Origin: Phallusia mammillata
Lineage: Eukaryota
Direction: 5' to 3'
Assembly (NCBI GenBank): GCA_965637545.1
Contig: OZ281494.1
Location: 12,834,001-12,898,000 of the forward strand
Length of the DNA stretch: 64,000 nucleotides
A program made the position numbers and the translations under genes. This document shows positions 22,582 to 35,600 of the stretch, piece by piece. Positions within the stretch are counted from its first letter, which is position 1. Every line of letters begins with the position of its first letter. The notes under the pieces are model-generated. The model made no database searches, was not told where the DNA came from, and was given only the letters and a program-made list of their open reading frames with translations.

Positions 22582-24575
22582 CTGAAAAAGACCAGACTGT
22601 TGAACTTGGACTAAGTCTGCACTGATTTAAACCGGTTAAAACGAGGTGCTGCCCCTATCGGGAAAGCCCAGTCGCTTTTGAAGTTTCTTGCTTACATAGC
22701 ATTTCTGCTTTTTGTCAATTTTTTAGTGTACACCTGTACGCCATGACCATCAATGCCTAGCGCTGCATGCCCAAAGTTCGTGCAATCGTGTACAAGCACG
22801 TTTTTCGTCGTCTTTAATTGCCGTTTGGAGAACCGTTTCGCAAAACTAAATTGATGTAACAGTGGCGCAATCACCAGCTGCCAACGCATTTCCAAACAAC
22901 GAACAGAAACGTGGTCGCTCAGTCTAAAATGTCCAGTGCAAACAACCTAAATTATCTAACAGTTTGGTTCCTTCATAATCGCTTAAAAGGAGTGCAAACT
23001 CTGCTTAAAGGGGGCGCAAGGATAGGGCCTAAGCATTATACGCACCTAAAGATAAAGTCACCAACAGAAACACTTCAATATTCATCGTAGTTGTCAGAAC
23101 TTTTCTTCTTTGTGAGTTGCTTTTTAGGGTTCACACTGTTCACCTTAGCTGATTATAATGATCTGTACGGAAGAACGTTTGGAAATGTTTATAAAGGTCC
23201 ATGCTTTTTTTCTTCAGGTCAGAATCTGGGGTTTTACGCCATGACGTTACTTAGGTTGCATCACGGATTCACGGTGTACCACGCAACAGGCGCCGCTTTT
23301 TACTTGGGCGACGCAAAACGTTTTTGCACACTTGTTTCTTTTTTTTACCCCACGAGCAAGCGTCAAGAAAAAAGGCAACGCGTACGCCATTGTAGAAAGC
23401 CGACTCATTTGGCCTCGCCGGTCATAGCGATCGTTTGCCTGTTTTTTTGTTTTATTGATGGTTTTAGACATAGAATTCTTTCATTATACATTTTGAAATG
23501 TCTGGTTTTTATGGAAGTTTTAAAGTTAAGATTTTTTCCAAAGATATAATAGTTTAGTTTAATAGAAAAGTTGAGTCAAGCTGCAGGTGGCAGCCATGTT
23601 AATTATTAGTCTAAGCCACTCTTTACTGGGTATGGCGACGGAAAGGTGATTTTGCCAAAGTAATTACGTTTTAAAATCAAGTCGGCTTCTATCAATTCAT
23701 TACAAGGATGTGCAATGCAAAACAATTTGTTCAGAATTTAGATGTAGCTTTCAATAAACAGGGTTTCATGCTGATTGCAATAGTTACAAATGTAAAAATC
23801 ACATATTTTTTTGATTCTAAAACTGATATCCTCAGATCCCTATAATAATACCCTTACAGTACTTATATTTTTTGCTTTTAAAATAAATGTTATTGTGTCA
23901 ATAGTATACAGTGGTCTATCTCAGACAAACATTTAAGCTCAACAAATCATAAACTATAACACATTTCTTAAAGTAAGGCTACAATAAACCATGAACTTAA
24001 TCATAAAATCATTTGATTATGTACACAATGTTCTGTTTTTTTTTGTTCTTACATCATAAAACAAACTATTTTGCTACTCTGTAAGTTGCTAAAAATAAGA
24101 GAAAAAGACCTAGCTAAAGTTGTTCAGAAATAAAGATTTTTTACATGACATGAAATATATACTCTACTATCAGTTCCTGTTCGAAATATCCCCATCAGGG
24201 AAAAATGTTTATTTAAGGTGTTTTTGAAGGTAATGTCCATCCCTTGTTGCAATCATTGATTTTTTGATGATTCATTGTTTTTTGACATGTAAAAGTTTGT
24301 TTAGAAATATGTAACAATGTGGTGAAAGATATTGGTACAACATTTTTAAAATGGCACCAATACCAACAGACAAAAGTGAGTTTGTGAGAACATAAATAAT
24401 GTTGTTTGGTTTGCATTGGCAACATGTTAAAATTTCCAAAATTTTGTATTTTGTTGTTGGTTGGGCACTTTTTTATTTGATGTAAGTTATAAAATGCAAC
24501 ACTATTCGTTAAGTATATATGGTAGATGAACATTAAAACTAAATTAAAATTGTTCGTTTTACAAATCTTTTGCAG

Positions 24576-27500
24576 ACAATCAATTGGGGTTGTCATGGCA
24601 AGACCCAGCATGGGTTCCACACCTCAGCAAGGAAAATGTACTCGATTACTTTTCAGAAAGGAGCAATCCGTTTTATGACAGAACCTGCAACAATGAAACC
24701 ATTAAAATGCAGAGACTGGGTCTGGAACATTTGGAGTAAGTGTAAATTTTGCATTTGCAAACATTAACAAAAATCAGTCCCTCTGCAATTGTTGATTGCG
24801 TCCAACGAATCATAACTTATACTGGATTTTTTTAGTGAGCTAATACACATTATTCCTAATTTCCTTTTTAGTAGTGTACAATACAACACAGATTTTGTCT
24901 GGTCCACGTGACTCTCAACTAAAATATAACTCTTTGATACAAAAAATGTAGTTTGTACCCTGTTTAGTACAAAAACTACTGATCTGTGATTAGGCCCTGG
25001 TGTGTAATGCAAGATTTTAAACAAATTTTGGTTTGAAACCTTGTACTTGTGCAAATTAGTTTTTTCAAGTACAAACCTAGTGCACAGTTTCCAAACTTAG
25101 CTCTCAAAATTAAAACACGAGGAATTATGTAGAAAAACTACCACTAATGATGATCCTTAAAGTGTTTGTGTACTGAATGATGGTCCTTTTAATGTGTGTG
25201 TACTGAATGAACAACATAAGAATTAGAAACCAGTTGTCAACTCTGCTTCTCCATTGCTCCCTCTTGTGGTAGTGCTTTTTTTAAATTGGGCCAAATCACC
25301 GTTTCAAAAGGCTACTGATAACGGGGTATGGTTTTTAAGGATAGTTGAGACTTATTCTAGGAGTTCAAAAATGTAACTTCGGTTTATGATTCATAAAGCG
25401 CATTTGGACTCGTTATAAGGTTACAAAACCATGGTTCGGTTCGGGTTCACTTCGTTTTGTTTTTAAGGGTTCGGGTTCGGTTCAGGTTTTGAAAAATGTA
25501 CATTTTCGGGTTTGGGTTTTGTTTGGGCAAATTGTCCGGTCGAAACAGGTTTGCGGTTTTTGAACCGGTTCAATTTTGGTTTTGATTTAATTCTACCCAT
25601 TATCTACTTGGCCTTATCAAACTCCAAAATAATTTTGACCGTGCACTGTTATTTTTGACACGCCCTATAAGTGTTATCTCGCGTATTTTTCAGTGCGCTG
25701 TTTTGAAAAAAAAAATCACAAATATAAAACGGACTGCATTTTTTTCTGGTTCAGCTCCGGTTCGGGTCCAACGCCAAACAAAAAATAGGGTTCAACTCCG
25801 GTTCGGGTTTTTAGATAATCGTTATTAGCGGTTCGGGTTTAATGAAATTAACCGCTCAAACCGGTTCGTAGGTTCGAGTTCAGTTCCGGTTCGGCTTGTG
25901 ATTAAATTGTAATGTTTATGTTGACTTGATCGTCGAGTTTTTTATTTGTTGTTTCCATAGAAACATGGTCGGCCTGGAGTATGTGTTGTTACATCACCAA
26001 GCACCTATACTTTACGTCATTCGAAAACAACGACGACAATCCCCAAAACAAGGTAAGTTGATCTCACCTAAGCCGTTTCACACGCCGAAGTTACATTGTT
26101 CATTGATAAAATGGTATATATTGTTGTTTTGGTATGCGCTTTTTAATCTATATTGAGTGATTAGTAATACGAAAATCTTCTGGTGAAAATATCTTTTGGG
26201 GTGAGGTCATACTTAAAAATTCCAATATTTTTGCTGATAAAGAAACTTCGCAAGGCCTCTTTGTGATTGTTTTTTTGCAACTTCGCTAAAATGCAGTTTG
26301 CCAAGTGCGCGAAGGCTAACCGATGTTCAACACTTCAGATACAAACTATTTGCTACTGGCAAACTTATGTACTTGCCACAATACGAAACAAGTGGCGGTA
26401 ATTTGCAACAAGTATTTCGTACATGTTTACTTGTTGACGAAGTTGTGCAGCAAAAGCTTTTGGTTGCTGTATAGGAAACTTGTTTAGTTTCCATATTAGT
26501 TTCTTACTACTTCTCTCTACTCTCAGTGGCGACAGAAATGGCGTCACAACTGAAACTCGAAAACACTGTTTTACATCTTGCGATATAAGATTTAGTAGCG
26601 TCTATATTGGACCTCAGTATGATCAATTTATTTTAATAGCTTTACGGATTCTATGTTATTCCGGGGGATCGAAGGTAGTTTTGTGACGTCACACACTGCG
26701 CAACTGTCACAAACACTTTCATTTGCTGTTGCGATTGTAAGTGTTCCTGGGGGTGTGCGTAATAATCTACGGAAACAAAAAGTGGTAAACACCACGTTGC
26801 AACTGGTGTTACGTACATCTGTAGTTTCCTATTTCCGTCCGTTGTTCAATGTCAAAAATGGTGTTTTCTATCTGCGCTTTACGTTTTATGTTTCTTTAAA
26901 TATTTGCTATACCAGATATAGTGACGACTCTATACATTTGCGGAAAACGATATTGATTTGCGGATGCGCGATATGCAACAATAGAAGTCTTTTGTTTAAT
27001 TTCACGTATTTCGAGACTTGTTAAAATTATACAAGCCTGGAATTTTTGCATTTAGTTTTGTTTTGAGACTGAAAGCATATGATACTATTTTTGATTTTGT
27101 CTATTATAATAAAACAGTTATAAATTGTCCTTGTCAATTTGCTTTGACAAAATAAAACGTTCTTGCTTCCGGACAAGCACGCACATTTCCCAAAGAAAAT
27201 AAGTCCACCGAGAAAAGCGTAGTTTACCGAATCGTAAAATTGGACATGTGTGATATGGCCACAATATTTTTTGTTGCAAACACTCAGATTTTACATTTCA
27301 ACCTTCTCAAACCTTTGGTACGCGCCACTTGAATAGCAACATTGACGTCAATTGCTGTTGGCCACGTCACACAAACTTAGTTCCCATTATTTTGACATCT
27401 TAGTTTTACTTCACAACGGGGAGCATTATGAAATGACGCGATTGCACATCATTACATGTGGTGAAATTTTGTGGAAATTCCTCAGCTTCGCTTTCAGTGT

Positions 27501-29970
27501 TTGCAAACTTGGTTTTCCAGATGGCGTTTATTTACCAAATGGTCCAACTAGGTGATTTCATGACAGGAACTACCCCTTTGTACATCCAGGACATCGGGTA
27601 TTTTGTTTCCACTAGGCGAGTTACAGATCCCTTAACTCCGGCCCAACCCCTTTTACAAATCCGGCTACAAGTAGCGTTTTAAGAAAATGCAAAATTGCTC
27701 ACACGCTATCTTCCTAAAATAGTCGCAAAATTTTGGCACTTTGATTCTAGACTTACATTGCATTGCTTAAAGTCTGTTATTTAATAAACCCTTGTCGCCA
27801 CCTTGTGGCTGTAATTACTCGCGCAAAATATTTGCCAATGCAGTCAGTTTGTCTACTTGAAGTATGACTGGAATCAACCTACCAACTCTGGCTCTACGAC
27901 CGAGACTTGCGATAACCACTCGAGTCATGCTCCGCGATGAACGGATATAAGTCGTACCTTTTGCTGAGTGTGGTTCAAGCCAAGGGTTTACGAAAGAACA
28001 ACAGCAAACTGTACAAACTATTCGGTTGGTAACTATTTGGATGCAACATGCCTAGATACTGTCTTATCAAAAAGCAGTTTTGATTTACTTGTTGCTTAAG
28101 TATTTTGTGACTGTTACCAAGACGACTTAAGTGCGAGCTCTCAAATGTTATTTTTAGTATTGCGTGCGTCACCAGTGGTACTAGACCCACAAGACAGGCA
28201 AACGAATTTAGCTGGGACCACTTGCCTATTGTCTGGTGGTTACTGAAATAGTACCACAAGATGCTCTGCTTATTTCCGTATGAGAGAAAGTAATTGTGAT
28301 TTCAACGAAGTGGTTGCCAAGTCGATTTTGCTGTTAGATGGATCTTTCAGAACCACTTGAGAATTGAAGCGAAACCATACAGCCACGTTTGTTTTTAACA
28401 TGATAACTGAACTTTGCCATATTTTTAAAGCTGCGGTCTCAGAAATTTTTGAAGACACTTTCGAAAGCAATGGGTGACTTAGTTTTTCTATGTTTCATTT
28501 AAAAAGCATAACAATAACCCGCGAAACAGGCCAATACGTTGTGATCCCAAAGTACTCATTGTAATGTTTCCAAAAACCAGTTGGCTCGTTATCTTTTTTT
28601 TCCATTTTGACTACGTAACATCATCGTGCTCGTAAACTGTTTGCTAAGATCATCGTAAAAACGGTGCCGTCCGGTCGCCGAAAGTTGCGACACTGTGGCG
28701 CAACACCTGACGCCATCGTCATGACAACGTGCGTAGCGCTTCACGCAGCTACGTAGTGATCAGGTGTAGTGGCGACACGATAAACGCAATTACCGCATTA
28801 CAATGGAATGTGAAGCCGACTTCTGGCTTTTAAATTGTTTTTCCCCTTCGGCCAGGCTTAGGGTTTTCACCTGGAGAAAAGGGCATTTTACCGTTGCCAG
28901 CAACAAATATTGTTTGCTGTGTTGCTCTGTTTGGTCATTTCATACGCCTAACAGTTTTTGTTTGTTCTCTACAGTAACCACGATTGCCGATTACCACATC
29001 ATAGCAGGAACTGTATACCAATCTCCTGATTTGTCATCAATCTGCAATTCAAGATTGGTATGTTATATTGTGATGTAACAAAGTGTGACAAAAAATATTT
29101 TATTTGTCGTATTTAACTTCAGTTTTTTTCGTTTTGATACAGCATTTACTTGAAAATAAAAGTATAGCTTTCATGTTGCTTCAAATCCGTACAGTTTACA
29201 TTAAAAGTGTTTTGAATCTATATTGAGGTAATTTTCTTTGTAAAGAGATTATGTAACCAATAAATATCTGCTAACTATTAACAGTTGCCTTTAAGTTTTA
29301 TTGCATAGTTTCCATTTATGCAGATGACCACATTTCATCGGTTGGAGGCAGCCTTTTCAGAAGGTTAGTGTACTGACTTTTATTAACTTGCAAAAAATGT
29401 CAGTTTATGAATCCATCATCAGATAACCTTAAATGAGCATATCGTGTAACAATCCCAATGTTTAAGGTTACATGGTGTTTTACAGCTCTGTCTTACTCAC
29501 GCTATCATCCTGCCAAAGGTTACTCATGGCAGTTCAATAAAAAGGATCAAAAGGAAAACAAAAAACCTGCCAAAGTAAAGGAAGAACCTGGTTCTTCATT
29601 CCAGTGTCGAAGAGTTGATGTTCTATTAAGCACGCTTACATCAAAGTTTCCTCATAAATTTGTACAGGTCTGTATTTGTCCTTAAATTCAGTGGCAAGTG
29701 TTAAGGTCTTGCAATATTGTAGTTTATTGCAAGGTTTGTAGTACAACTGATGAATAACTTTCTGACCAAAGTTTTTTATTTTCTCAGACACAACCAGGTG
29801 AAAAACCAGTGCCAACACAAGCATTGACATCCGCTGAAGTAAAACCTGAAAAGTTAGCAAACCCTGCTGCTGCTCAACCCCTGACAGCTGCACCACGCCC
29901 ACCTGTGGCCAATGTGACAGTAAAACAAGAGCCAAAACCTCCCCCTGATAAACGAATGAAGTTTATGTGA
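24576..29970 (+). CDS. MED6: Mediator of RNA polymerase II transcription subunit 6 (first coding exon not fixed)
   Basis: Exons 24576-24735 ([15 protein letters not shown]...[27 protein letters not shown]), 25961-26052 ([28 protein letters not shown]), 28975-29057 ([16 protein letters not shown]), 29324-29363, 29486-29667 ([11 protein letters not shown]...[18 protein letters not shown]) and 29788-29970 (QPGEKPVP...PPDKRMKFM*). These match the human MED6 sequence as I recall it. A phase-compatible first-exon candidate is 23596-23629. Confidence 0.95.
25430..25897. repeat. GGTTC(G)GG-rich strand-biased repeat array in MED6 intron
   Basis: About 20 copies of GGTTC/GGGTT(C/T) motifs in ~470 bp. 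Resembles the subterminal array of a non-autonomous DNA transposon; no TIR or TSD was resolved. Confidence 0.6.
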
Positions 29971-30254
29971 AGTGCACAAATTAAACCACTGGGCAAATAT
30001 AAAAGTATGTTTCCTGCGTGCTGCCCACTTGTTATACACTTGCAGTACCCTATCAGTGCAAAACATCATGTGCATGGTCAAGTTTCCAAAAGTTAGAATA
30101 GATACTTTGTTTGTGGCAATTAGTACAAACATACCTTTTCATTAAAGGTAAATGAAATATCTGCACCTATTACTGGAGTTGAATACCTAGACATATAGAT
30201 AGACCCATTGTCATTGTTTAGCAATAGCATTTATTTCGATGCACAAAAAAGGGT

Positions 30255-30854
30255 TTATGTGTCTGTTTCTTCTGAATTGTGTTTTTTAACAAAATACATG
30301 TACACTTTCAAACTATTGCTTTCAGTGCCTATCTCTGTAAAAGAAACATTTATTTGTGTTTCACTACATCTCAAATCATCCAGCCTTACTTCTGGAGGCT
30401 CAGTTGTGATTTGAACAAAGATTCCATTAGGTTTAAGCACACGAAAAACTTCTTTCATCAACATTCCAAATTGTTTTTTACCATCGCAATGTCGTAGAAT
30501 AGCATCTGAAGTACCCTTATCAATTACCATGTCTATACTACAAGTTGCAAAAGGAAGTTGATTGCATATGTCACATACAACATAAGTGCATTGTGGAAAT
30601 TGTGTTGATAATTTCACTAAGCATTCGATTGATGCATCAAGGCAATATACTGATAGATCCGAATGTTTTTCTGCTAATGTTGGACCAAGTGATGATGTTC
30701 CACAACCAATATCCAATGCATTTTGACATGAGTTGTGATGAATAATATTGTCCAAATGATCCTTTATATCTTTGTATGACACAAACCATTCTCTTGACTC
30801 ATCTGATGAATTATAAAAGTTTGACCATGCTTCTTTCATTCCCAGATTCATCAT
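30255..30854 (-). CDS. CSKMT: Citrate synthase-lysine N-methyltransferase-like (METTL12 family), single 199-aa coding exon; possibly the last exon of an NME6 fusion
   Basis: EWFVSY, motif I ALDIGCGTSSL, post-II IDKGTSDA and QITTEPPEVRL match human CSKMT as I recall it (DWFFGY, VLDVGCGTSSL, LDKGTWDA, QFSDEDPDVRL). The true ATG is at 30854; the ORF track starts on TTG. No mitochondrial presequence. A strong splice acceptor lies 11 nt upstream of the ATG. Confidence 0.85.
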   Translation of the reverse strand: MMNLGMKEAWSNFYNSSDESREWFVSYKDIKDHLDNIIHHNSCQNALDIGCGTSSLGPTLAEKHSDLSVYCLDASIECLVKLSTQFPQCTYVVCDICNQLPFATCSIDMVIDKGTSDAILRHCDGKKQFGMLMKEVFRVLKPNGIFVQITTEPPEVRLDDLRCSETQINVSFTEIGTESNSLKVYMYFVKKHNSEETDT

Positions 30855-30989
30855 CAAATTTTTAGCTAAAACAATGTAACACCTGGTAATTCTTGCAACA
30901 TAAACTTAGTTAAAATCAAAGTGGAGGGTAGGTTCCATAGTTCTTACAAATTTAAGCTAACTTCATGTGGATTTAATAATATTTCAGTG

Positions 30990-31902
30990 TTATAAATTGA
31001 TGAACATACCAGCATCTGAACTTTGGTAATCATTGTTATGTTGGTCACCAAATATGTGATGTGATGAAGTGGGGTCAAAAATGGGTTCTTCACCTAAATC
31101 AAGCTGTTCTAGCCATTTGTTTGCATTGAAGTCAGGAAAAAAGAAGGAAGTTTCTTCAGCTGCTGATTGCACAGAATCTGACCCATGCACAGTGTTTCGT
31201 GTATCAGTTAACCCAAATCTTCCTCTGATTGTGTTTGGGTCTGTGAACTGACTCTAAAAATACATTTTGGGAATAGACTGAACAAGTGAAAATGTTAAAC
31301 ATTGATATGATATTGCTTTAGGTACAGAAGTTGACCAAACACAAAAAAAGTTTAAAATAATCTTCATTAACAAACAAAGCTTTTGATAAGTGGTGGTTAC
31401 TTGACGTTAGTTGTAATAGAAAGTATTGATGCCTTTGTAGTTGGCCATTTGCAACTGGATATATGAAATTGCAGACATTTTTTCAAGTTGTTTCGAGTTT
31501 TACAACCAAGCTTGCTTTCACTGGTCACAATTAATTCTTTGGACCCAATACACTATCCTAAATTTTGCATCACCAGCAAAAGAACCTCTTAAAAAATCTT
31601 ACCTTGTAAACTTTTGTTGGGCCCATTAGTTTACGCCAGTCCGTGATTCCGTTCTCCTTCGCCAACAGTAAAGCTATTATAGGACCAGATGTCATGCAAT
31701 CAACTAAACGGCGATAAAAAAAATTCTCTTTGTGTTGTTTATAAAACATTTCCGAGTCGCGTTTTTGCCATCGAACCACTTTACGTTTTAAAATATAAAA
31801 CTTCTTTTTTAAAATCTCTTGCTCAATCAAGCTGACAATTGTTGGATTTCCAGCAATATCAGGTTTTAGAAGTCCAACAGTAAGTTGAAGTTTACTCTTC
31901 AT
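30990..31902 (-). CDS. NME6: Nucleoside diphosphate kinase 6 (187 aa if unfused)
   Basis: Exon 31603-31902 (LQLTVGLLKPD...FFYRRLVDCMTSGP...WRKLMGPTKVYK) and exon 30990-31253 (IRGRFGLTDTRNTVHGSDS...FFPDF). The catalytic His in HGSD is retained. GT-AG intron, phase 0. Confidence 0.93.
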
Positions 31903-32630
31903 TTGTGTTTGATTTATACTGTTTTTTTTTTTGCAAATTCTCAAGTTTGTTTTGATCACGTGTTCGGAGTGTTCCGCTCTGGTGAATATCTGTTAAGTCC
32001 TGAGCGGCACAGTTAGATATGCAGCATTTGTCTCTTAATCACAGTATCTCGTTATTTGTTTTATTTGCTTCCTATTGGGTGTTCAATTTTGGGCTTTTGT
32101 ATCTGTCGGTATTTAACGTCCTACTCAATTTAGACGTTACTGACGTCAAAATGTACCCTAGCGGAAACTGAAATGTCACCGTTTTGCTGCTAAACAAAAT
32201 TTCCGCAGTCGTTAAAATTCATTGACCTTATATCACGTTTGGTGTAAAACAACTAGCGTTATTGTGTTTATAACAACACTTGGTTGTAAACACGTCACGA
32301 CATCGAAAAAATCAATTGATATGTGATCCGACGCCCGCGTTAGAGAAATCGTGTTGAGATTACGCATCACACTAAAGAAACATTGTCGCCTAAGAGAAGA
32401 ACTGAGAAGTAAAAACATACCATGGCATGGATACCAAAATAACAACGAAGAACATGTTCAGAAGAAGAAATTTATTTTTTGAGTTGAAGTTTGGAAGATT
32501 GCCGAAATGGGTTGATACGTGCTTGCTAACAGATACATCAAATCTTAAAGTACAAAATTTGTTGTTTCAAAATTTTCATCAGAAAATAGTTGTCATGTTC
32601 TGTTTTCTTGGTTAAGGCACCATTCGTGCA

Positions 32631-35600
32631 CTAACCAAAAATTGGACTCCAAAGAAATACTGTAAATAAAAACGATTTATAAGGTTTGCATCCATTTCAA
32701 GTTTGATTTATAAGACAAGTAGCCTACATATGAACGGTTAGTGGGACAAACTTACCAGCCATAGAGGTTGTAGCGAAAAACGCAATGGTTGTTGCAGAGA
32801 GAATGTACAAGGCCGTTTGGGAATCATCTTTATCCAGATCTAGACCAAGGAAGTTTGTTTTTTTGTCAACACCTCCAACTGGGGATGTCACGTTGTCAAA
32901 GGTCATGCAGGCAAGCAATCCTTCAGCAGGGTACGATTTGGTGAAAATTTCCTTCAGGCAGAGAGTCGACTTCTTAGGTATCCGGGGTCGTTCCGGGTCA
33001 CTGAAGTTGACCCAATGTAACCCGAATCGCTCGCTATAACCCGAATTCCACTCAAAGTTGTCCATCAGAGACCAGGCTGTATAGCCAGTGACATTTACAC
33101 CGTCTAGTTTGATTGCTAAACAACAAGAAACAATATGTGCTAATTAATGTAGGTGAGTAATTTTCCAAGCTGCAGCCTTGTGACTTGCAAGTAATGTCTT
33201 AACCCAACGGAATGTTCGTTGGCACAACAAACTGTTACTCAATGAATTTTCTACTAGTCTACTCAATATTCTATTTCAACCTTTGAGCACTTCGTTGATG
33301 TAGCCATGATAAAAGTTTGTCCTCCAATAATCATTAAGTTCCACGGATGAGCCTTTTTCAGAGAATCCGTTTTCAGTGATAAGGATTGGAGGATCGCCAT
33401 ATTGATCCTTAATCCAAGAGAGAAGACGACGGACACCCCATGGAACCTATGAGAATAAACCGTAATGTAGGATAGAGCATTTTAAATGTCTAACTTCAAT
33501 TCTTGTTGGAAACCAGTTACCAAACAGTTTTGTATTTTGTACGTTTGAACAAATATGTGTGCGTTCTATTAAACATCGTCTTACGTCTTTGAGCCAAGAT
33601 GAAGCCGATTGTGGCCAAGTAGTGTCCTTCGTGGTTCCCGCCTCTTGATCTTGAAAGTATCCCACGGAATTGATTGACGATGGGTGGAACGAATCAAACG
33701 CCAAGTTGGTCGTGTAGTGGTTAAAACCGAAGAAATCCGAACTTCCCTTAATAAGGTTTTTCTCTTCTTCGGTAAACTTCGGAAGCCGGGAGACGGGTTC
33801 TCCTTGGGCGGCACTTCGCGCATCAATTAGTTCCTGCCCAACATTTGTTTCAACAAATTACATGTATTAAATCATACATGTCCGTAACATTTTCGATCGC
33901 AACAGCTTTGTGAAATTTACAGTCTGTACCTTCATAACGTCCGGGTAATCCCCATTGACAAAGATCGGATGAGCCCACCAACCCATGTAGAACTGCAAAA
34001 TGCGATCGCTGGCATCATGATCGGTTTCGCGAAACATGTTTCTAGCCTCATGCCAGTCGCAGTTGCACGTGATAGCGACTTCTCCTTGTTGTTCAGCTGC
34101 ATATTTTGCATAGTACAATCTGATGATAAAGACAAATTGTTGGTTGTTAGGAACTTTATCAATCAAAGAGTGAGTCTGTAACCAAATTTGGCATAATGTT
34201 CGTCGACTTTGTGGCAGTGTAAACAGGGAAATGCGCAAACGTAATTGTAAGTTAATGAGAAAAATCCCTTTGCATGGAAACTTAAAAAGCTAATCTGACG
34301 AATTAATATTTCTTCCTATTATGTTATTTTCCCCAACCGATGTGATTTCAAACTTTCTCAGGCTAACGTAACAGGTAGAGCTACTAACACTGAGCTTGGG
34401 CTGGCCCCCGCTCTGGGAATTTCTGGTAGGTGGCGCTAAGGAACATTGGCGTTTATGGTGCTGTTAGAGCAGTTTGGGTTTATGGTAAGAATAATTGCTG
34501 AGTCAGCACCATAAACGCCTATGCTCCTTAGCGCCACCTACCAGAAATTCCCAGAGCGGGGGCCAGCCCAAGCTCAGTGTTAGTAGTTCTACCAACGTAA
34601 CAATTGTCCTAAGATGTCACAATTGATAAGACAATCAGCGTTCTATTGACTGACGTCAACTGCCTTTTCACTGTATACCAATTTTGCAATTAGTTTGTAA
34701 GTTGCGTTTAATGCGTTGTGGTTCGCCGGTTGTAGCTTTCATGTGTTGTTGAAAAGTGTAAATCGTTATGTTCAGGCAACGATAAAGTTAAGTACTGAAT
34801 CTATTTCATGCCAAATGATGAACTGGAAAATGTTGCTTTTATTGCTGTCGTGTCTAAATCCATCAGTACTGACGTTTTCGTTGCCGGTAAGTTTTGTCTT
34901 AGAAGTTAGAGTAATTTTGAAATATTTGCTTTTGTACATAATTATTGTACTTTGCGTTGATGTGTACTGGCGGTCCGCAATTTATCCAAACTTTTTAAGT
35001 GATTTAATTGTTCTTTTGCTTGTGGCATGTGAAAAACAATGTATACCAAAATTGAATGAAACATAATTTTACGTTGATAAATGTTGCTTGTAATATATCA
35101 TGTCAACTTTTACCGGTAAGCCTTGGCATGAGCTAACAGGACATTGTGCCCAGCTTTGTAGTCAGAACGACCAGAATCTCTGAGATTTGGCGAATGAACT
35201 GCAACAGAATATCCGAGCACGGTGAATACCCAAGGCTCGTTGAATGTGATCCATTTCTTTACTTTGGATCCGAATGCGTTGAAACAAGCATCAGCATATT
35301 CCACGAACAAATCGATTATCTGGCTGTTAGGCCATCCACCAAATGTATCCTAAAAAGGTAGCAAAAGCTTTTTTGTATGTTTTTGTTAATAAAAGGTTTG
35401 GAACATCATCGACTTTGCACAATTGTTTTGGTGCATTGACCAGTTTTTCAAAAAATTAACTCTAACCTGATACACCAAGGGCAGATCCCAATGATAAAGA
35501 GTGACCATTGGTTTGATGTTGGCAGCGAGAAGAGCGTCAATTAAACGATTGTAGTAATCCACAGCTGCAGGGTTGATTCCATCCGATACGTTACCGGTTG

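Follow-up and report, generated by a model that had tools for sequence, protein, structure and literature searches.

The Phallusia mammillata genome places coding sequence for a nucleoside diphosphate kinase (NDK) of the NME6 type directly upstream of a methyltransferase resembling CSKMT/METTL12, raising the question whether the locus holds two genes or one. It lies on the minus strand, at positions 30,255 to 31,902, of a 64,000-nucleotide stretch (GenBank assembly GCA_965637545.1, contig OZ281494.1, positions 12,834,001 to 12,898,000), which we call the window, which contains no N and whose numbering is used throughout. An original prediction, made from the letters of the window alone, had proposed that a 144-nt intron joins the two open reading frames (ORFs) into one in-frame protein of about 384 aa. 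We found that the locus is one genuine gene for a 384-aa two-enzyme protein. The predicted coordinates (donor at 31010 in phase 1, acceptor at 30865, 144 nt between them) were all correct on the minus strand, and the fusion itself was borne out by RNA contigs, a deposited protein, orthologues in other tunicates and the phylogeny of the methyltransferase.

Direct reading of the minus strand placed the start codon ATG at 31902. The first coding exon (31603..31902, 100 codons, residues 1–100) ends in phase 0 with the donor AAG/GTAAGA and encodes the N-terminal two thirds of the NME6-type NDK domain. It is followed by intron 1 (31254..31602, 349 nt, GT..AG, phase 0) and, after TTTTTAG, by exon 2 (31010..31253), which carries residues 101–181 plus the first base of codon 182 and encodes the C-terminal part of the NDK domain with the catalytic NxxHGSD motif, then a variable disordered linker. 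Intron 2 (30866..31009, 144 nt, GTATGT..TTTTAG, phase 1) joins both domains; its donor is GCTG/GTATGT, with 31010 as the last exon base, and its acceptor TTGTTTTAG/CT stands directly before 30865, 11 nt ahead of the first ATG (30854) of the methyltransferase ORF, which was read as 30255–30857 (200 codons). Exon 3 (30255..30865) encodes residues 182–384, comprising the CSKMT/METTL12-type methyltransferase domain, and the stop codon at 30257–30255. Once 30866–31009 (144 nt) is spliced out, 1152 coding nt give 384 aa with no stop, reading ...QSSDAAKNLMMNLGMKEAW..., and the predicted junction peptide is ...SSDAAKNLMMNLGMK.... About 20 nt past the stop codon, AATAAA (30231..30236), as read from the sequence, probably serves as the poly(A) signal of the fusion gene.

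Parts of this layout would also suit two genes. An in-frame TAA at 30992–30990, separated from the intron 2 donor by only six codons (GMFINL), would terminate a stand-alone NME6, ATTAAA follows at 30977 within the same intron, and the methyltransferase exon begins with ATGs of its own. Tunicates use operons and spliced-leader trans-splicing, which adds to the appeal of such an arrangement: NME6 and CSKMT, perhaps sharing an operon, would yield a stand-alone NME6 ending at TAA 30990 and a methyltransferase starting from ATG 30854, possibly trans-spliced to a spliced leader at 30865, while any conjoined transcript would be a read-through by-product.

A run search with 30100–32100 returned 14 runs matching about 60% of words, the value expected for sequence lacking its introns, and contigs of four runs from four different studies were aligned to 28800–33200. 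Five GT..AG introns were absent from these contigs, indicating that the runs derive from spliced RNA. The joint 30865/31010, skipping 144 nt bounded by CT..AC on the plus strand and hence by GT..AG on the gene strand, was present in contigs of all four runs, so that the predicted junction is found in RNA; the joint 31253/31603 was likewise present in all four. Contig ends spread over 31917–31932, which defines a 5' untranslated region (UTR) of the fusion mRNA at 31903..31932. Among the contigs of the four runs none retained intron 2, and its 144 nt were covered by no contig. The fused ORF is thus the main assembled transcript form, and it is also conserved elsewhere, including as a single exon, as described below; this is a true fusion gene.

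Upstream of the usual 5' end, run X1 contained a separate contig on the minus strand, of depth 4 compared with 68 for the main one, which spans 31821–32040 and has one extra T at 31921. The AG at 31920–31919 could be a spliced-leader acceptor, in which case this contig may be the outron.

The fusion was also found as a deposited protein. An exhaustive representative protein search with the methyltransferase ORF as query revealed a set of fusion proteins, and the best match, at 99% identity over residues 185–384, was a 384-aa protein (P0004) deposited from Phallusia mammillata itself and derived from cDNA (CAB3262926.1, UniProt A0A6F9DIY5). The spliced translation of the window is identical to CAB3262926.1 at 383 of 384 residues, the sole difference being D302E. 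Codon 302 is polymorphic: an A/T polymorphism at position 30504 turns the family motif DKGTSDA into DKGTSEA, with E in the deposited protein and run X13 and D in the window and runs X1, X2 and X5.

Pfam assigned NDK to exon 1 (E 1.8e-20, 73.7 bits) and exon 2 (E 4.8e-10, 39.9 bits) and a class I methyltransferase (Methyltransf_25/11/31, E 8e-12) to exon 3, while the NDK match of the whole protein P0004 (PF00334) reached 119 bits, compared with a cut-off of 27. The protein accordingly divides into an NME6-type NDK domain (residues 1 to ~150), a disordered linker of about 30 residues, which varies in length and sequence among the fusions, and a CSKMT/METTL12-type domain (~185–384). An AlphaFold2 model from a 35-row alignment had a mean predicted local distance difference test score (pLDDT) of 87 and a predicted TM-score of 0.60, with both domains mostly above 90 and residues 161–178 below 50, and thus depicts the fusion as two well-folded domains on a flexible tether. 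In a Foldseek search the N-terminal half retrieved many NDKs and the C-terminal half retrieved 2pxx (E 1.3e-13, TMt 0.77).

Within the NDK half, residues K13, Y54, R90, T96, R110, N120, H123, G124, D126 and E134 were invariant in six fusions and two stand-alone NDK6 proteins. The best named relatives, at about 52% identity, are called 'nucleoside diphosphate kinase 6-like', and the structural match in the Atlas was a cluster of 186-aa chordate NDKs (TM 0.87). Together with the placement of the Ciona orthologue by Desvignes et al. (2009), these matches suggest that the NDK half is of the NME6 type. As in NME6 (human NP_005784, a Group II NME), one NDK domain carries the classical active-site residues, including the catalytic His, and the N-terminus is short and lacks a conventional presequence. 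The two differ at the C-terminus, where vertebrate and arthropod NME6 (~186–230 aa) end in a short tail, whereas the tunicate tail runs via the linker into a 200-aa methyltransferase. An NDK domain joined to an unrelated domain is also seen in NME7 (DM10 + NDK) and NME8/9 (thioredoxin + NDK) (PMC2777172), while the NME-family papers of Desvignes and colleagues describe no NME member that carries a methyltransferase domain.

The nearest solved structure to the methyltransferase domain is 2pxx, human EEF1AKMT4, yet at only ~33 bits (E 3.5e-7). Against 2pxx, the window domain scored 33.2 bits and a named fish CSKMT 30.7 bits, compared with 125 bits for an EEF1AKMT4-like protein. When a profile of the tunicate domains was used, the best named matches were CSKMT of Apostichopus, Astyanax and Hoplias and 'METTL12' of Priapulus. 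The domain was placed by phylogeny. Cluster names being almost never given, the outgroup side of the tree was calibrated with PDB 2pxx and 5wcj; P0150 is METTL13-like, and the trees were built with EEF1AKMT2 left out. The fusions grouped with named CSKMT/METTL12 proteins in FastTree (175 domains, support 96), in a quick IQ-TREE analysis (52 domains, 96) and in a careful one (LG+C20 PMSF, 99/96). In the last, EEF1AKMT4/METTL13-like proteins split off at 100/98, and the ascidian clade (98/93) sits on a long stem inside the CSKMT clade. EEF1AKMT4, although the closest solved structure (TM 0.77), is thus a different paralogue, and its identity for this domain was rejected on the low bit score and the tree split. 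The trees support the methyltransferase as CSKMT/METTL12 at the family level, as had been proposed. EEF1AKMT4 is also expressed in vertebrates fused to ECE2, as the read-through product EEF1AKMT4-ECE2, in which the methyltransferase is N-terminal rather than C-terminal as in the tunicate fusion; taken together, the two cases imply that this small methyltransferase family has been fused to unrelated enzymes more than once.

The Phallusia domain shares with CSKMT/METTL12, besides the clade, a seven-beta-strand fold, motif I (LDIGCGTS in Phallusia, LDIGCGxS across the fusions) and the motif DKGTxD(A/S) (DKGTSDA in Phallusia); post I (C-x-D) is conserved across the fusions as well. Both halves of the protein thus keep their catalytic or cofactor motifs, and the motif conservation in the methyltransferase argues for an active enzyme. 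The two differ in their N-termini. Human CS-KMT is a stand-alone protein of about 240 aa that bears, at its N-terminus, a cleavable mitochondrial targeting sequence (MTS) of its own, and it trimethylates citrate synthase at Lys-395; its orthologues have a scattered distribution (PMC9006661). The tunicate domain, in contrast, is a C-terminal extension of NME6 without an MTS. Its conserved Trp lies about 13 residues past the splice junction with the NDK domain in front, and named CSKMTs carry at least 30 extra N-terminal residues relative to it; the suggestion that the methyltransferase lacks a presequence was supported.

Searching for NDK and Methyltransf in one protein by Pfam, we recognised the same architecture in five other tunicate sequences: XP_002129729 of Ciona intestinalis (386 aa), XP_039258645 of Styela clava (382 aa), P0162 (384 aa) and P0163 (372 aa) from Styela-like Logan RNA contigs, and P0179 (424 aa) from an Oikopleura mRNA in a Tara Oceans metatranscriptome contig. 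The Ciona orthologue (L002:3001-4161) is a single continuous ORF, so that the fusion there is independent of splicing. In Styela clava, exon 1 ends after codon 100, placing intron 1 at the same position as in Phallusia, and the intron at the domain boundary is again in phase 1 (A/GTAAGG ... CACAG/AT), with a stop seven codons into it. In three metagenomic eukaryotic contigs (L001, L008 and L009), methyltransferase exons that group with the Phallusia/Ciona branch are preceded by same-strand NDK exons; the NDK stop is preceded, at a distance of 1–15 codons, by a phase-1 donor, and ahead of the methyltransferase exon stands a candidate acceptor that restores its frame. The phase of the boundary proposed from the window recurs in Styela, and the exon layout of the three contigs is compatible with it. 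The recurrence of a stop soon after the donor, in Phallusia, Styela and the three contigs, is what an AT-rich intron gives by chance, and the TAA just past the Phallusia donor would be ordinary intron sequence rather than a regulated alternative end. The further proposal that intron retention yields a stand-alone NME6 found no support, the retained form being in no contig and Ciona, whose gene is an uninterrupted ORF, being unable to use such a route at all.

Several of these loci showed features of their own. The Ciona gene lacks both introns; its neighbours are RPAP1, upstream on the opposite strand, and, downstream, a FAD_binding_3 gene, and MED6 is not among them. One speculative origin is retrocopying of the spliced fusion mRNA, with the copy displacing the parent gene; the flanks of the Ciona gene contained no poly(A) remnant and no obvious target-site duplication. 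For Styela clava (L003), NCBI predicts a second isoform of 291 aa (P0154, XP_077965890.1) in which nine starting residues of its own (MLRFFTTST) are followed by the sequence from exon 2 on; such an isoform would lose the first 100 NDK residues and keep the methyltransferase. In L009 (1-6400) the first NDK exon was absent within 8 kb upstream of the methyltransferase exon, and what lies there instead is a BIR/RING gene on the opposite strand together with ORFs of retrotransposons (rve, Chromo); the gene may be disrupted at this locus, or its intron 1 may be very long.

The P0179 mRNA opens with TTTTGAGTCCGATTTCGATTGTCTAACAG, the last 29 nt of the 40-nt spliced leader of Oikopleura dioica (PMC6883708), which identifies its source as an appendicularian. 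In L004:1-32 and L005:1-28 the Oikopleura spliced leader directly abuts the start codon (...CTAACAG/ATG), leaving the gene without a 5' UTR of its own.

The fusion thus spans phlebobranch and stolidobranch ascidians and one appendicularian, and the sequences examined from outside tunicates did not show it. No NDK-like sequence was present within 10 kb of the CSKMT-like gene of a sea urchin (L010, GCA_000002235, which we take to be Strongylocentrotus purpuratus) or of Priapulus caudatus (L011). In the ESM Atlas the two domains were combined in no large cluster, a result that is uninformative since only clusters of at least 50 members were searched. The fusion is probably old and tunicate-wide. 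Since it is common to Ciona, Styela and its relatives, and Oikopleura, a single origin in the tunicate stem lineage, kept since then, would be the most likely history.

The original prediction knew of no description of such a gene, and this held in part: in the open-access papers searched, by topic and by accession number, the NME6–methyltransferase fusion appears to be undescribed. The proteins themselves have nevertheless been public for years: those of Ciona, Styela and Phallusia have been deposited under uninformative names, and A0A6F9DIY5 is called 'Nucleoside diphosphate kinase' or 'uncharacterized protein LOC100185269', while NCBI names the Styela protein 'CSKMT, mitochondrial-like'. 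Desvignes et al. (2009) listed Ciona XP_002129729 as 'Nme6' without mentioning the extra domain, described the domain structure as well conserved among chordates, and gave no second Nme6 for Ciona (PMC2777172). The word 'methyltransferase' is absent from this paper and from its 2010 follow-up, and of the fusion accession numbers only that of Ciona occurs in the open-access papers searched, and only in these two.

How might the fusion work? Human NME6 is an NDP kinase of the mitochondrial matrix, associated with the inner membrane, that is required to supply mitochondria with pyrimidine ribonucleotides and that enters them with no conventional MTS (PMC11312278). By analogy, the NME6 half would bring the whole protein into the matrix; a transit peptide on the methyltransferase would then be dispensable and hence absent, the methyltransferase having traded its own presequence for the NME6 module. 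Inside the matrix, the kinase would contribute to mitochondrial nucleotide supply, while the substrate of the methyltransferase would be citrate synthase or some other matrix protein. We favour this overall explanation, a real tunicate fusion gene whose NME6 half would drive import and whose two halves would keep their ancestral roles, and put its probability at about 0.82.

Several points weigh against it. The runs were classed as RNA by guess only and were available as assembled contigs; such contigs drop rare isoforms and carry no information on transcript ends or abundance, and a minor NME6 mRNA that keeps the intron may exist beside the fusion form, as may a separate methyltransferase mRNA with trans-splicing at 30865. 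The fusion product is documented at the level of transcript and ORF. The N-terminus (MKSKLQLTV...) has no recognisable presequence, with the fold starting from residue 5, and the tunicate domain is only 27–34% identical to named CSKMTs (about 30% to vertebrate CSKMT). The splice sites of L001, L008 and L009 were read from DNA only, their ascidian-like identity being drawn from the tree. Finally, the Oikopleura domain has a very long branch and falls apart from the ascidians in the free tree; a single tunicate methyltransferase clade was not rejected by the AU test (p = 0.33), so a single origin is allowed, not demonstrated.

The alternative that survives best accepts a real fusion and holds that the methyltransferase acts on a substrate other than citrate synthase, for example the NME6 half itself, an RCC1L-type partner or another mitochondrial gene-expression protein, or that the protein is not mitochondrial. 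The low identity to named CSKMTs, the long ascidian stem and the lack of a classical presequence all leave room for it. In its favour, too, proteins joined by fusion frequently act on one another or within a single complex. Paralogues of this small family, moreover, differ in substrate, eEF1A versus citrate synthase (PMC9006661). The domain nevertheless lies inside the CSKMT/METTL12 clade at 99/96, in keeping with the CSKMT-like name of the Styela protein, the conserved motifs speak for an active enzyme, and the data contain no positive pointer to a different substrate. We consider this alternative less likely than not, though it deserves to be kept in mind.

Two separate genes are far harder to maintain, even allowing for the stop and ATTAAA in intron 2, the ATGs of exon 3, the blindness of contigs to rare isoforms and the spliced leader on the Oikopleura mRNA. 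Only the spliced fusion form was assembled in all four runs, the Ciona orthologue runs through the boundary with neither stop nor acceptor, and the fusion ORF has been kept in Styela, its two relatives and Oikopleura. The methyltransferase, unlike named CSKMTs, has no targeting sequence of its own, and the 2009 survey offers Ciona no other Nme6. A two-gene locus with a by-product transcript is thus very improbable. An artefact, whether a mis-join that made the ORFs neighbours or a chance GT/AG pair at the junction, is excluded by contigs of four studies that span all three exons and by the independent deposited protein, and five further tunicate sequences as well as three metagenomic loci show the same architecture.

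Around the fusion gene, its convergent neighbour is MED6 on the plus strand (24563-30291, with tblastn matches at 24563-24733, 25962-26051, 28968-29063 and 29443-29967). The last MED6 exon and 3' UTR occupy 29785..30291, the coding sequence ending at 29970 and a contig of run X13 at 30291. The MED6 3' UTR thus extends to 30291 or beyond, a position within the final 12 codons of exon 3, and the tails of the two mRNAs overlap; assembly had merged them into a single contig in three runs. The tail-to-tail NME6-CSKMT/MED6 arrangement recurs in Styela clava (L003) and on the contigs L006 and L007, and the genes of P0162 and P0163 have a convergent MED6 downstream, as in Styela and the window. Upstream, the next same-strand ORF (32724-33065, minus strand) is an exon of a glycoside hydrolase family 1 (lactase-like) gene.

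Domain fusions of metabolic enzymes are common, and no new kind of biology is claimed here. At the level of annotation, the locus illustrates how one orthologue can pass as 'Nucleoside diphosphate kinase', 'uncharacterized protein' or 'CSKMT-like' across databases, and the tunicate 'Nme6' is not the plain single-domain protein assumed in the NME-family literature. The link of NME6 to mitochondrial pyrimidine supply dates only from 2023 and its route into the matrix is presequence-free and undefined, and we know of no established physiological role for CS-KMT. Both enzymes are recently characterised and poorly understood, and their fusion hints at a shared workplace; a functional coupling of nucleotide supply to citrate-synthase methylation, as the original prediction proposed, would go further. 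In the stronger Rosetta-stone sense, NME6 and CSKMT-type enzymes would act in one complex or pathway in animal mitochondria generally, which we regard as unlikely; the methyltransferase might then modify NME6, RCC1L or another component of nucleotide supply or gene expression, or NME6 might adjoin citrate synthase. If this is true, an interaction yet to be discovered would be expected in vertebrates, as would a physiological role for the patchily distributed CS-KMT. The tunicate fusion itself amounts to a natural experiment in which NME6 would drive the import of a passenger domain.

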